Part shown: positions 53,208 to 58,910 of the stretch, one piece after another
How the letters are laid out: each line of letters starts with the position of its first letter
How positions within the stretch are numbered: the first letter of the stretch is position 1
DNA from: Trichosphaerium sp. ATCC 40318
Lineage: Eukaryota > Protista > Tubulinea
Assembly: GCA_038496445.1 (NCBI GenBank)
Contig: JALMLS010000378.1
Coordinates: 62,001-126,000, forward strand
Length of the DNA stretch: 64,000 bases
Direction of reading: 5' to 3'
Notes under the pieces: generated by a model
The model's database searches: none
Told to the model about the DNA's origin: nothing
Seen by the model: only the letters and a program-made list of their open reading frames with translations
Translations under genes and position numbers: made by a program

Positions 53208-54932
53208 TCAAGCAACAACCTTTGTAGGATGCGGGTTAAGCTTTGCGAGTAATTCAAGTTTCGCTGTTATAGGAGTCATCCAATCATCCTCTAGTAATCC
53301 TCCTATTAAAAAACCTATTAGTACTGTACAATATTTAAATCACGTGTAGTACTAACCTGTGTCTGAAGAGTCAGGGTTCATACACCAGAAAAAATTATCA
53401 GTGACATCATTATCTTGCAACCATTTTATAAATCTATTGATCCATTGACCATCAGCACCATCTAAATGACCTCCCCATTCACCTACAACAAGAGCTTGAC
53501 CTAAAACGGAATAAATTACATTTTTTAGTAAAAGTCACGTCACGTGACAGCATAAAGAACTCTGTTACGGACCAGTTTTTTTTGGAATAAATCCGAAGTG
53601 ATTTTGCCAAATAGCAGGCATATTCTCAGGAAAGTTTGGATCTTTCCAGTAAGGTTGGTAAGCAACATCTGGTCCATATGTGTGCGGGGAGTATACAAGC
53701 TTATCTTGTAGGTTGATTTTTATTGGAGCTGTATTGACACCTATCAAGTTACCACCATAAAAGCAGTTTTGAGCGCAAGGAGGTGAAGACGCAACACCTT
53801 CTGCGAAAACAAGAAACCTAAACAAAACCGATCAGAATCATGTTTTTTTCTAGACTCAGATACCGTTCTCCACCATTTGAATGGATATAGTTTGATATGC
53901 GCGCTACCGCTGCATCCCAATCCGTCTTAAGATTTCCAGTGTTCCATGTACCTGTATAGTTATAGTTAGAAGAGAACACTCAAGAAGTCAATGTCACCTT
54001 GAAAAGGTTCGTTCTTTAAATCAAAAGCAACTACATTCCATGTGTTAGCGTAGCGCTTGATAAGTTTGGACTAGAGGTTGTTATCAATATTACTTATGCC
54101 AGTAAGTAACTCAAAGGGTACGTACCCATCCTTGTAGAACTAATGACTCAGGGTGAGATCCATCATACCTTTCGACACTGGTTAAAAAAATGTTTCATAA
54201 AATCTGGCTTACCATAGTCCATTACTCGCATATGCATCAGCTTCGAAAGAATGCAAATCAAGCATGATTAAGATACCACGTTTACCAGCTTCGTTTATTA
54301 TTGTATCCATAACTTGCATAGATGTCAAGCTGTTGACAAAAAAATAAATACTAACAAACAAATATTATTTACTTATTACTTACTTCTGTATATCTTGGTT
54401 TATTAAGTCGCCAGAATGATTATAGTTCCCGATACCATTAGGCATGGGATCATCCAATACCAAATCAAGGTAAAACGGAACACGCATCGCATTGAAATCT
54501 ACGCACTGTCAGTAAAAACAAAAAACTCGAAAAAAAAAAAAAGAAAAAAAAAGTTAACCGTTGGCTTGAATGAAGTCCAAAAAGAAATGATAATCAATGT
54601 CCCATAAACCATGGAATACGCGAATAGATGTCTAAGATTAAAGATTTAGAAGTACTTCAAACGAAAAATAACAGTGACAGCCAAAAAAGGCGAGACGTAA
54701 CTTCGAAACCAAACCAACTGAGTCCTTTTAGATAAAAACGCTCATTATTAAGCCATAAACTAAAACGTGGTTTGTTTAATCAATCACGTGCGATAATCAC
54801 GTTTCTGCCCTTTGCATACCTGCCGTTACGCGATTTTAAGTCTAATAGAGTACTGTTTCCTTTCACTTTCTTTGTACTGGCGAATGTTAAGCACAAAACG
54901 AGAAGCAGTGCAAACAGAGTTTGTTGTATCAT
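53208..54932 (-). CDS. Secreted GH5 endoglucanase (cellulase, GH5_1-like)
   Basis: GLSWFGFE, NAMRVPF, LIMLDLH, AFDLKNEP (acid/base Glu), VYSPHTYGPDV, VGEWGG (nucleophile Glu), WCMNPDSSDTGGLL.DDW; signal peptide. Confidence 0.93.
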
Positions 54933-55173
54933 TGCTGAGTACGTTATTTGAGTAAAACTAACATTGAATTTTCTTGGTCAGTTGACTTATCACGTGACCT
55001 AGCTTTCGTAAAGTTTAGTAAACGTATCACATAATTACATAACCAATACGTTACATAAGGCATTCAGTTTCATTCGTGAGATCCAAGTTGGTTTTGCTAA
55101 ATGTACATTTGGTTTTTTATTTTATTTTTCAAAGGTGCATACAAGGTTGTTGATTAAGATTTGTGTTTTACAT

Positions 55174-58100
55174 TTACATAACGCTGCATGCGTCTCCTTT
55201 ACCACCTGTTTCTTTTTTCCATTGTATCATTTGTTCTTCGTAATCCTCAACTTGCTTCAAGTACGATAACGGAGGCCATTGATTCTTTTCAACATTTTTC
55301 TTATTTGCACCCTGCGAAAAAACAGTCAGCAAACAACGTAATCTTGAGGATTTGATTTGAAACAAACAGTGTGAGTAGGTAGTAGGTACCTTAATTAGCT
55401 TGTAATCTTTTCTTTGTGTAACAGCTTGATAATTAGTACCTAGGCAACAGAGTGAGCACATGTTTTTTGTGGTTTTTTAAATCATTTTTAACGTACTCAA
55501 GAAATGTAAGCAAAACGCTTCTAACTGCTTTGCTGATGCTGATTGAGCATCGAGTAGCATTTGTGGTATCGATAGATCTGCTTTGATGACGCTATCAACT
55601 ACAGCCTATAACAAATCCATAAGACATGAGGTAATCGCACAAAACAAACTACGTACAGTTTCCACACTTTTAGAGAGGTACAACTCACATAACGTGACTA
55701 GTCTCTTCAAACCAAATCTGTTAGCGAGCTTGAGAATACCCATACCATCATTACCAATAATGGATGAATGATCAGTGTATCTACAAAACCAATAAGCCAA
55801 GAAAAAACCAAAAAACTGTTGTTTCTAAAAAAACTTACATGTACTCCAAGAAAGCAAGGAATGTCTTCAGCGTTGTATTCTCAATGACGATGTGCTAAAG
55901 ATAATATTAGTTAATCTTTTACACGGAATACTGGACTATAAATCTTACTTTTTGTTGTGCTTGAGGTTCTTCTTCCTCCTGTTTCTCCTCTTTCTTATTT
56001 TTTTCGACATTAACTTCTGCTTTCGGTTTTTCTTCTTTTTGTACTTTGACCTTCTTTGCTTCGCTCTGTTGTTGTGCAAGTTTTTCAAGCATTTGCTTTG
56101 CTACAAAGTTTTCAACAAGTTGACCCATCTCTTTACGGCAAACTGGACAATCACTACTGCGTTCTTTCCAAGCTAAAAAACAAAAATCAACAAGATTATT
56201 CATCTTAAAAACAGAACTACTGACGACGTACCTGTGATGCATTTACGACAGAAAGTATGGCCACAAGTCGTTATCAATACAGGATCATAGAAGAGGCTAG
56301 CACATATAGTACAAACGAGTTCTTCGTTCTCTTCTTCGTCCAAATCATCTTGAACAACACCGGCGCCAGCACCGACGTTTGGGTTTTGTTTTGGTTTTTG
56401 CTTCTTGACAGACTTGAGAGGATTGACACGAGCAATGAGGAGTTCAAGTGGTTTACACCGCGTTTTAATAAGCGCTCTATGACCAGGAACTATAACGCCA
56501 TTGACATCAAAGAACACATCAGCATCACGGCTCTTGTTTAAGTAAAGAGACTTGGCATGTTCTCCAAGTTGATCACAAAGATATGTTCCAAAAGAAGGAT
56601 TAAGAAACTCATTGCCTTCACTGATATTCTCGCATATTTGTTGAAGCTCTGGTAGAAGGAACAATTTGGCTGCAGCTGCTATTTCTTCCAAATGGTCATT
56701 TTTGTCTTTCGCAAAAAGTCAGTTGAAGATTCCGACTTTTCAAGTAGAGTTTTGATAGTTGCTTACCTGTGATTGTGGCTTGTCCAGTATACAAAAATTC
56801 GAGCACACGCATGAACACTGTATGTGTAATATCTGGGGTGAGATGTATAATATTTGTTTTACCCAGCTGTAGTTCTTTAATTGGAGGTACTTTTCCAGCT
56901 TCAATATTCTTGCTTGAAAAAGCTTTTCCATCACCAGCATCACGTGTCTTTAAAAGTCGTCGGAAAAACTCTGAGGCACATGTGAGAATAATTTTATGCG
57001 CTTGTATTGTAGATCCTTCAACGATTATACTAACATCAGAGAGATGAGGATATTTGATAAGAAACTTGAGATCATCGCCTAAAAAAATTCCAATAAGTTT
57101 TCCATTGCTTGTTGCTTCAGTTGAAGGGCTTCTTCAGTCGGTATGAAGGCGTACCGAAGGTAGATGTTTTTATATTTATCCAAGGAGCTGGTACACCTGG
57201 AGGTAAAGCTGGTGCTACAGGCATAGGTTTCTTGTTCTTTGATTCTGATTTTTTCTTCATTTTTTGTTTTTTCATATTTGCTGGACTTAACACTGAACGG
57301 ATAGCTGTATCGAACAGATTCTTTACACCCTTTTGTGTTAAAGCACTGTTTTCTATATATGCAAAGGCACCAACCTCTAAGAAATTAAGTTAAAACAAAG
57401 AGAGTCATCTGAATGCTATTTAAAAGAAAATCTCACTTGCCTTTGGCTAACTGTTGTCCCATTGCAGCTGTAACAGGGATCATGCCTTTTTCTCTTAGTT
57501 TTTTGAGACTCTCTGGGTTGTTGATCAAATCCACTTTATTACCAGCCTGAAAAAGAAGAAAAGTTTCAGCGAACGAACAGAATATTAAATGGGTTTTTTT
57601 TTTGTCTTTGTTTGAAATGTCACGTGGTATCACAGTCACGTACAATTATGATTGGTGTAGCGGGACAGTGGTGTCTAATCTCTGGAATCCACTTTGTTTT
57701 AATATTATGCATAGATGTCTCTGACATTACAGACAAACAAACTACAAAGTAGGTAAGCCATCGGAACAGAAAAAAGCCCAAAAAAAGCAACAAAATCCGA
57801 CGGTCGGAGTTTTTTGACGTACTGATAAAGACATCTGTTTGGGGGTACGATAACGGGCGTAGGCGATCATAATCTTCCTATTTGAAGGGTATTAGACGTA
57901 TTTGGGCAATAGAAGTTGTTTTGTTGAACTACGAATATATACGAACCTGTCCAGCAGTGTCCCAAAGACCAAGATTTATTGGCTTTCCATCTATCATTAC
58001 ATTGGCTAAAGGATTGTCAGATTTTGGCAGTTAACACGCTAAAACGTGTTCGTTTGGTTCATTACGCACCTGAATAGTTATCAAAAACAGTAGGAACATA

Positions 58101-58282
58101 TTCTATGATCTAGTTAGTATTTTTAAACCAAATACGCGGTGTACCCCCAGGAAACGCGTTCGTTGTGTATGATATGAGTAAGCTAAGGCGAAATGAGCGG
58201 TTTTGTCGCGAAATGTATTGTTATCATACCAGCTTTTTCCTACGGCCCCATCGCCAACGACAACGCACTTTATTGCTTGCAT
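55174..58282 (-). CDS. RhoBTB / RacA-type GTPase with RING insertion and CaaX
   Basis: [45 protein letters not shown]; Pro-rich linker; two BTB domains; QWPP C-terminal domain; CSVM end. Confidence 0.92.
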
Positions 58283-58910
58283 TTGATGTTGTGGTGTTAT
58301 ATTTTTGTTGATAAATAAACAATAAGCTAAAAGAAAGTTTAGCCTAACCAACACTTTTTATCAATTTTATTAAACACGAAAATAAAGTCACTCCTAGCTC
58401 GCTCAGTACTAGTAATGATATCAACGTGCACTTAAGATCTTGCGTAAGGTACTTGGTAAAGAAACACCTTTTCATTTTAGTATAAATGTTTCAACGACAG
58501 CTGAGTTGTCTGAATAGGTTGAAGCCTAGCACTTCAATCGGTGCATGTTATAAGTGCCTTAGCCTTTGGCAACGATATTGGAGGATACACATATCCACCA
58601 AGCTGATTAACGGAAAGATATTTTGAAGTTAGAGTGGAAACTATTTAAGCAATTTACATAAGCAATTTTGTTTGAAGACGACTTGAGATTGAATGTTTAG
58701 TATTCACGTGCTCATACACTCCGCATGTATAGCAATCTACTGATTGCTTGTAGATAATAATAGATTAGTAAACCACATATTTCACAAGTGTTCATGGTAG
58801 CTAATGCAAGTGTTACTAGTGTCAATCTCTTGGTTTTCATGACTTTAAATGAGTTGACCAAAAGTAAACGAAATTGGTTCAAGCGTTGTGTGAACAGCAA
58901 GTGGTTCTCA

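Follow-up and report, generated by a model that had tools for sequence, protein, structure and literature searches.

RhoBTB proteins of animals and RacA of Dictyostelium join a Rho-family GTPase to two BTB domains, BTB1 and BTB2. Stogios et al. label the elements of the core BTB fold B1-B2-A1-A2-B3, preceded in long-form domains by beta1 and alpha1 (PMC1257465), so that the A2-B3 loop of this scheme is the alpha3/beta4 loop of other accounts. In KLHL3, KLHL11 and SPOP that loop, with its phi-x-E motif, is the main contact for Cullin-3 (Cul3), the hydrophobic residue of the motif burying the largest surface in it (PMC3616122). Human RhoBTB2 has a 115-residue insertion at A2-B3 of BTB1 (PMC1257465); this BTB1 insertion of RhoBTBs is termed “of unknown function” in the same literature, which places Cul3 on BTB1 and not on BTB2 (PMC1257465, PMC4931677). 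The gene considered here belongs to the amoeba Trichosphaerium sp. ATCC 40318 and lies at 55174..58282 on the minus strand of a 64,000-nucleotide stretch of contig JALMLS010000378.1 (the window; all coordinates below are window positions on the minus strand unless stated otherwise). It encodes a RacA/RhoBTB-like protein with a RING finger nested in the alpha3/beta4 loop of BTB2.

Described members, Dictyostelium RacA and animal RhoBTB1-3, lack a RING, and an insertion is known from their BTB1 alone (PMC1257465, PMC4931677), in agreement with an initial annotation of this DNA, which had named BTB1 as the site of the known insertion. Compared with these proteins, the one encoded here has a short BTB1 loop, a 139-residue RING insert in BTB2, canonical equivalents of Gly12 and Gln61 in its GTPase, and a CAAX end; according to a published report (PMC8305917), neither D. 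discoideum RacA nor human RhoBTB1/2 has a CAAX box, and the GTPase of human RhoBTB1/2, as described in the literature, is unlike the working-switch-like domain found here. The initial annotation had suggested a GTPase-regulated, membrane-targeted, self-contained ubiquitin ligase (E3). We lean towards a similar reading: this is a real, expressed, single-copy RacA/RhoBTB with a RING in its BTB2 loop, and it probably acts as a self-contained E3 by the mechanism outlined in the last section.

The RING finger in the BTB2 loop

The insert comprises 139 residues (420-558; 55949..56424) in the A2-B3 (alpha3/beta4) loop of BTB2, where relatives have nothing comparable: the segment from A1 to A3 spans 178 residues here versus 40-74 in relatives. 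It consists of a basic/acidic lead-in, the RING, a helical stretch and a linker rich in lysine and glutamate. The initial annotation had seen a RING interrupting BTB2 at 56090-56400, a span that falls within the insert (56424..55949), and the elements it quoted can be followed down the minus strand: ADVFFDV...IKTRC at residues 387-409 (from 56523 down), a linker, the RING, the Lys/Glu-rich linker, and HIVIENTT, with which BTB2 resumes (residue 559, 55894) directly after intron 11.

That the interrupted domain is the second BTB is indicated by the conserved inter-BTB linker upstream of it (NPSFGT...LYLNK, residues 361-383; 56533..56601), whose N-P-S-x-x-T block is nearly invariant in the family alignment and which, in all relatives, forms one contiguous alignment block with the C-terminal part of BTB1 and the N-terminal part of BTB2. 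The N-terminal half of BTB2 (B1, B2, A1 and A2; residues 387-419; 56425..56523) was delimited in a BTB2 alignment of 61 relatives, and the C-terminal half (B3 and A3-A5; residues 559-617; 55660..55894, containing intron 12) by alignment to the same half in relatives; on exon 13 the latter matches positions 72-109 of the Pfam BTB model (E 0.023).

The RING itself (residues 457-495; 56138..56313) is of the C3HC4 type and was recognised from Pfam, from matches to RING structures in the PDB and from an alignment across its splice junction. Its predicted zinc ligands (C457, C460, C473, H475, C478, C481, C492 and C495) all stand at cross-brace spacing, C-x2-C-x12-C-x-H-x2-C-x2-C-x10-C-x2-C, which lies within the range taken to define a RING, C-x2-C-x9-39-C-x1-3-H-x2-3-C-x2-C-x4-48-C-x2-C. 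A phase-1 intron of 59 nucleotides (56173..56231) separates ligands 6 and 7. The gene was searched exon by exon, so that the Pfam scan of the RING covered its exon-10 half alone; this half scores 34.9 bits against zf-RING_UBOX (gathering threshold 25.2; E 1.6e-8), 34.4 against zf-C3HC4_2 (27) and 30.8 against zf-C3HC4 (21), and matches the solved RING domains of PCGF1, RING2/BMI1, TRIM31, LNX and TRIM21 with E values down to 2.4e-6. Across the junction, the RING aligns with that of a relative, P0004 (43 bits, E 1.2e-13, local alignment). In NCBIfam the one match was a partial one to the rad18 RING, far under the cut-off.

In RING fingers the usual positions for contact with a ubiquitin-conjugating enzyme (E2), including the linchpin, are an isoleucine after the first cysteine pair, a tryptophan in the helix, a proline before the last pair and an arginine after the last cysteine. 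As read from the gene model, all of these are present here (Ile459, Trp485, Pro493 and Arg496). With its eight ligands, Pfam scores above gathering and E2-contact residues, the RING is, to judge from its sequence, complete and no chance pattern, and it appears competent to bind an E2, much as first proposed. One alternative is that it is a non-catalytic zinc module, structural or partner-binding like those of BARD1, PCGF or MDMX, which dimerises or binds a RING protein without engaging an E2. The best PDB matches of the exon-10 half do include PCGF1, BMI1 and BARD1, which are partners in RING heterodimers, and the helical stretch after the RING could be a dimer interface. The E2-contact residues are nevertheless all in place, and relatives carry at the equivalent site U-boxes and, in one clade, an E2 domain, which are modules of the catalytic pathway; a non-catalytic RING seems to us rather improbable.

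Contigs from four public runs (X1, X2, X3 and X5) were mapped on window positions 55100-58400. The run type (RNA) could only be guessed; contigs without introns must derive from messenger RNA (mRNA), and they are accordingly treated as transcripts. All 15 modelled introns are matched by contig joints, including the GC-AG intron and the one inside the RING, and the spliced contigs that confirm introns and retain the RING come from three studies: a 1599-nucleotide X3 contig runs through exons 8-16 without a gap, a 941-nucleotide X1 contig covers exons 9-11, and one of 279 nucleotides from X2 covers exons 11-13. The model's junction of 56232 with 56172 is reproduced to the letter in both the X3 and the X1 contig. 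Identity between the X1 contigs and the window is about 98%, and 13 of the 16 coding-site differences are synonymous, as are the two that fall inside the RING. The gene is expressed as modelled. In addition, a low-depth X1 contig of 192 nucleotides (X1 record 2, window 55656-55840) has intron 12 unspliced and may be a trace of pre-mRNA or of DNA.

These contigs also bear on the possibility of an artefact, whether a mis-assembly, a chimeric gene model or a RING exon that is normally spliced out. The initial annotation had called for complementary DNA and had named transcripts that splice out the RING as the result that would contradict it; this was not borne out, and among the spliced contigs of the public runs no well-supported joint removes the RING. 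What can be cited for an artefact is an odd X5 joint, 55489 to 57256, with 25 unrelated letters between and a depth of 3.5, which would delete the entire BTB region. It was dismissed as an artefact of the low-complexity sequence in which it lies, and it comes from a run holding almost none of the locus. The independent X1, X2 and X3 contigs, on the other hand, carry the RING exons spliced as modelled, the X1 differences are mostly synonymous, skipping of exon 11 (224 nucleotides) would shift the frame, and retention of the 59-nucleotide RING intron would lead to a stop after 9 codons. An artefactual origin is in our view very improbable.

Ubiquitination modules in RacA-like relatives

The closest named relative is a RacA-like protein of Acytostelium (P0109, 580 residues; E 3.9e-157, local phmmer), which has no RING and an uninterrupted BTB2. 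The two are collinear save for the insert, residues 1-419 and 559-701 of the query corresponding to 1-419 and 429-571 of the target. This match, together with the GTPase, the two BTB domains and the shared linkers, upholds the earlier assignment to the RacA/RhoBTB family. RING-less forms are also found in other dictyostelids, Ceratiomyxa, Planoprotostelium, Capsaspora and many invertebrates (as “rho-related protein racA-like”), and it is the RING-less kind that a 2021 survey of amoebozoan Rho GTPases covers, RacA having been verified there from Dictyostelia and Variosea only. The BTB1 loop is short in the dictyostelid proteins too, so that a large BTB1 insertion is not a defining feature of the wider RhoBTB/RacA family.

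Among the RacA-like entries of public protein sets, dozens possess a U-box or a RING and four possess an E2 domain; in all module-bearing proteins examined the module lies between helix A2 and strand B3 of BTB1, with BTB2 uninterrupted. U-boxes in BTB1 are widespread across Tubulinea, Discosea, Archamoebae and Anaeramoeba: they occur in Arcella, Amoeba, Rhizamoeba, Flabellula, Pellita, Luapelamoeba, Mastigamoeba, Mastigella, Pelomyxa and Anaeramoeba (U-box proteins include P0062, P0158, P0160, P0163, P0164, P0166, P0219, P0246, P0250 and P0264). RING forms were found in Vannella, Stenamoeba, Lithocolla and several metagenomic proteins. Mataza and three metagenomic relatives (P0260, P0248, P0255 and P0265) combine a VWA domain with a ubiquitin-conjugating domain in a BTB1 loop of about 620 residues and form one well-supported clade; in P0260 (Mataza sp. 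D1, 1196 residues) VWA spans 428-543 and UQ_con 691-820 (E 1.3e-26). Named examples of module-bearing proteins include Arcella intermedia A0A6B2KZ06, the Pelomyxa schiedti “rac gtpase”, Mastigamoeba balamuthi m51a1_g9329, Anaeramoeba ignava M0811_02593, Vannella robusta A0A7S4IGK0 and a protein of Lithocolla globosa, and certain module-bearing entries have been named automatically in UniProt, for instance as “RING-type E3 ubiquitin transferase”. Transcripts from Rhizamoeba, Flabellula, Amoeba, Pellita, Luapelamoeba and Stenamoeba likewise encode a U-box or RING within the BTB1 loop. Among the high-scoring matches to the family profile are also two proteins, P0159 (Anaeramoeba ignava, 888 residues) and P0242, with three to five tandem Rho-type GTPase domains.

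The initial annotation did not know this architecture from described RhoBTBs; that a RhoBTB with its own RING-type module would be an unknown architecture is not supported in that form. Its further question, whether the arrangement is common among RacA orthologs, receives a divided answer: a built-in RING or U-box is common in RacA relatives, and the BTB2 position is, among the proteins examined, confined to this gene. An exhaustive HMMER search with exon 10 against 1.84 billion representative proteins gave 417 matches, the best 150 of which were listed, and a profile word search gave 793 matches at E <= 1e-20, the best 120 of which were examined; neither among those 150 nor among those 120 was there a RING, U-box or E2 domain in BTB2, and none of the 150 listed matches had a BTB part and a RING part in the order of this gene. 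An exon-10 word search of a set of 5.8 billion proteins yielded 55 candidates, none of them significant and none an exon-sized fragment joining the N-terminal half of BTB2 to a RING. Scanning metagenomes with exon 10 led to 42 loci, four of them RacA-like without a RING in BTB2 and the remainder unrelated RING genes, and in none of the 42 did a RING follow the N-terminal half of BTB2. Otherwise the BTB2 RING was seen only in transcripts about 98-99% identical to this gene. What is new, as judged by these comparisons, is the BTB2 position of the RING, which makes this gene a positional variant of a broad RhoBTB-like subfamily with built-in E3 modules.

The protist U-box and RING proteins share with the Trichosphaerium protein the scaffold, in most cases a CAAX end, and the nesting of an E2-recruiting module in a BTB alpha3/beta4 loop; they differ in that the module is in BTB1, whereas here a C3HC4 RING is in BTB2, and most amoebozoan forms use a U-box. 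A looser parallel is TRIM23/ARD1, an E3 of the RING-B-box-coiled-coil kind with a C-terminal ARF GTPase domain. It, too, has a small GTPase and a RING E3 module in one polypeptide, but its GTPase family and domain order are others, it has no BTB, and its RING stands at the end of the chain instead of inside another domain. The full-text literature searched contained no account of a RhoBTB/RacA protein with a RING, U-box or E2 domain inside it: the module-bearing subfamily is sizeable and present in databases, yet it appears in no paper found there.

The surrounding scaffold

The coding region comprises 16 exons (716 codons plus stop), from an ATG at 58282 to a stop at 55176-55174, giving 2151 coding bases and 716 residues. 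The exon model was built from three-frame translation and reading of splice sites, with GT/GC..AG sites that preserve one frame. Its 15 introns measure 42-97 nucleotides and are all GT-AG except intron 7 in the GTPase part (57377..57440), which is GC-AG with the donor AAG/GCAAGT; its joint, 57376/57441 (ends CT..GC), is present in X1 and X3, as is that of the RING intron (56172/56232). This is the single RacA-like locus in the 70.3-megabase assembly, no second RacA-like gene having been detected. The order of domains in the protein is Rac-like GTPase, proline-rich linker, BTB1, conserved linker, N-terminal half of BTB2, RING insert, C-terminal half of BTB2, BACK-like tail and the tetrapeptide CSVM.

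The Rho-family GTPase (about residues 1-180; 57279..58282) has an intact set of catalytic motifs: GDGAVGKS (G1), the switch-I threonine, DTAGQ, NKVD and SAL, as well as the Rho insert. Taken exon by exon, its Pfam matches are weak on account of the short exons; its alignment with relatives whose Pfam Ras matches reach E 1e-48 to 1e-50 starts at residue 1. Since the equivalents of Gly12 and Gln61, the switch-I threonine, NKVD and SAL are kept, the domain looks like a functional switch. The proline-rich linker that follows (P-x-P-P...A-P-W-I-x-I, residues 198-216; 57171..57227) is shared with the family alignment (A1), which also contains the inter-BTB linker described above.

BTB1 (about residues 222-350; 56644..57078, containing intron 9) is supported by a Pfam BTB match on exon 9 (E 8.8e-13) and by alignment to relatives. 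Its A2-B3 loop is short, about 30 residues, and there is no large insertion of the kind found in BTB1 of animal RhoBTBs. Downstream of BTB2, a BACK/3-box-like region with a Q-W-P-P motif (residues 634-689; 55258..55560) aligns to the region in which P0033, P0044 and P0070 weakly match Pfam BACK (PF07707); the exons that encode it here have no Pfam match of their own. The protein ends in CSVM (residues 713-716; 55177..55188), directly followed by the stop codon. By its sequence this is a farnesyl-type CAAX box with prenylation predicted, which agrees with the membrane targeting proposed earlier. As 50 of 61 relatives have a CAAX-like C-terminal tetrapeptide, membrane targeting is apparently a family trait and no peculiarity of this gene.

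Next to the gene, minus-strand open reading frame fragments at window 53480-54490 resemble, by eye, a split glycoside hydrolase, with candidate GH5-type cellulase-like motifs (LDLHSFEAD... and ...YSPHTYGPD...).

Possible mechanism, origin and implications

How might such a protein work? The RING would recruit a ubiquitin-loaded E2 directly, as suggested by the isoleucine, tryptophan, proline and arginine at the usual contact and linchpin positions, and it would take the place of Cul3/Rbx1 on BTB2, given that it occupies the loop at which canonical BTB adaptors dock Cul3 and, through it, the RING of Rbx1. Through its BTB domains the protein would dimerise and bind substrates; attachment of the ligase to a membrane would come from the farnesyl-type CAAX end, and gating from the Rac-like switch, in analogy to the autoinhibition proposed for RhoBTB. 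A self-contained, GTPase-gated, membrane-anchored E3 of this kind is plausible; a U-box, a RING or an E2 domain fills the BTB1 loop of many protist relatives, which suggests that direct recruitment of E2 may be a recurrent solution in the family.

Likeness to the canonical Cul3 adaptors (KLHL3, KLHL11, SPOP and KEAP1) lies in the succession of a BTB and a 3-box/BACK-like element and, in BTB2 of many RacA-like relatives, in a G-x-F-x-E that resembles their phi-x-E: a motif of this type is found in the BTB2 loop of 33 of 61 relatives. The difference is that the motif-bearing BTB2 loop is here replaced by the RING insert, which sits in that very stretch, and the motif is missing. Another possibility, however, is a hybrid ligase in which Cul3/Rbx1 is still bound, for example through BTB1 as reported for human RhoBTB2, with the RING as an accessory that might drive autoubiquitination and turnover, prime chains or serve a second class of substrates. 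The placing of Cul3 on BTB1 rather than BTB2 in RhoBTBs (PMC1257465, PMC4931677) would suit this arrangement, as would a BTB1 that is uninterrupted apart from its short loop, and the retention of the BACK/3-box-like tail. Reading of the model, though, reveals no phi-x-E after helix A2 of BTB1, and BTB2 is without one too; moreover, relatives have repeatedly put E3 or E2 modules into the Cul3-docking loop, a pattern more in keeping with substitution than with addition. The hybrid strikes us as possible but doubtful.

Several points also weigh against a self-contained ligase. About half of the relatives likewise lack a clear phi-x-E in BTB2, so that its absence here is weak evidence; a large insertion at this loop in BTB1 of human RhoBTB2 does not prevent the binding of Cul3, so that an insert alone does not exclude Cul3. 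Conservation of the BTB2 RING is documented at very shallow depth alone, in the nearly identical transcripts. Many RINGs, finally, are inactive partners.

The RING may have been relocated from BTB1 or gained independently. Two quick maximum-likelihood trees, with inserts masked, both place the gene among the amoebozoan U-box forms, with support of 81-91 in the Shimodaira-Hasegawa-like approximate likelihood ratio test (SH-aLRT); its sisters differ between the trees, and the placement is never decisive. Against the RING of this gene, the one in BTB1 of the family member P0004 scores no better than TRIM-like RINGs outside the family. The Trichosphaerium genome itself revealed no recent donor: the best other RINGs there, one of them TRAF-like, are 44-53% identical over about 35 residues. 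The most similar RING elsewhere in the genome (L002, G000:C14:330555-333665; 49% over 37 residues) adjoins what look by eye like TRAF-type zinc-finger motifs, and the gene is TRAF-like rather than a RhoBTB.

A metagenomic RING-less RacA-like gene (L020:3020-3235) has an intron in the alpha3/beta4 loop of BTB2, just before a Y-F-S-E motif and about eight codons upstream of the position that intron 11 takes here. Given that the insert ends exactly at intron 11, and that this distant relative has one in the corresponding loop, entry of the insert through an intron can be imagined, as a speculation.

We raise, tentatively and at low confidence, a wider idea: that E2-recruiting modules in the Cullin-3 loop are ancestral, or prevail, outside animals and dictyostelids, that the BTB1 insertion of animals is a scar, and that dependence on Cul3 is secondary. 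If this were true, RhoBTBs would at the outset have been single-chain ubiquitin ligases, anchored to membranes and gated by their GTPase, with the scar marking a lost U-box or RING; and an amoeba that has lost the BTB1 U-box of its relatives and carries a RING in the equivalent loop of BTB2 would point to a strong need for such a module.

RhoBTBs are candidate tumour suppressors, and the neurogenetics literature lists RHOBTB2. Modules placed in the Cullin-3 loop, in BTB1 of many protists and in BTB2 of one amoeba, amount to a natural experiment on the wiring of the RhoBTB scaffold to the ubiquitin system, and they make some basic questions testable. Can a RhoBTB be a stand-alone E3? Is such a ligase gated by its GTPase? 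Is the BTB1 insertion of animals the remnant of a module?

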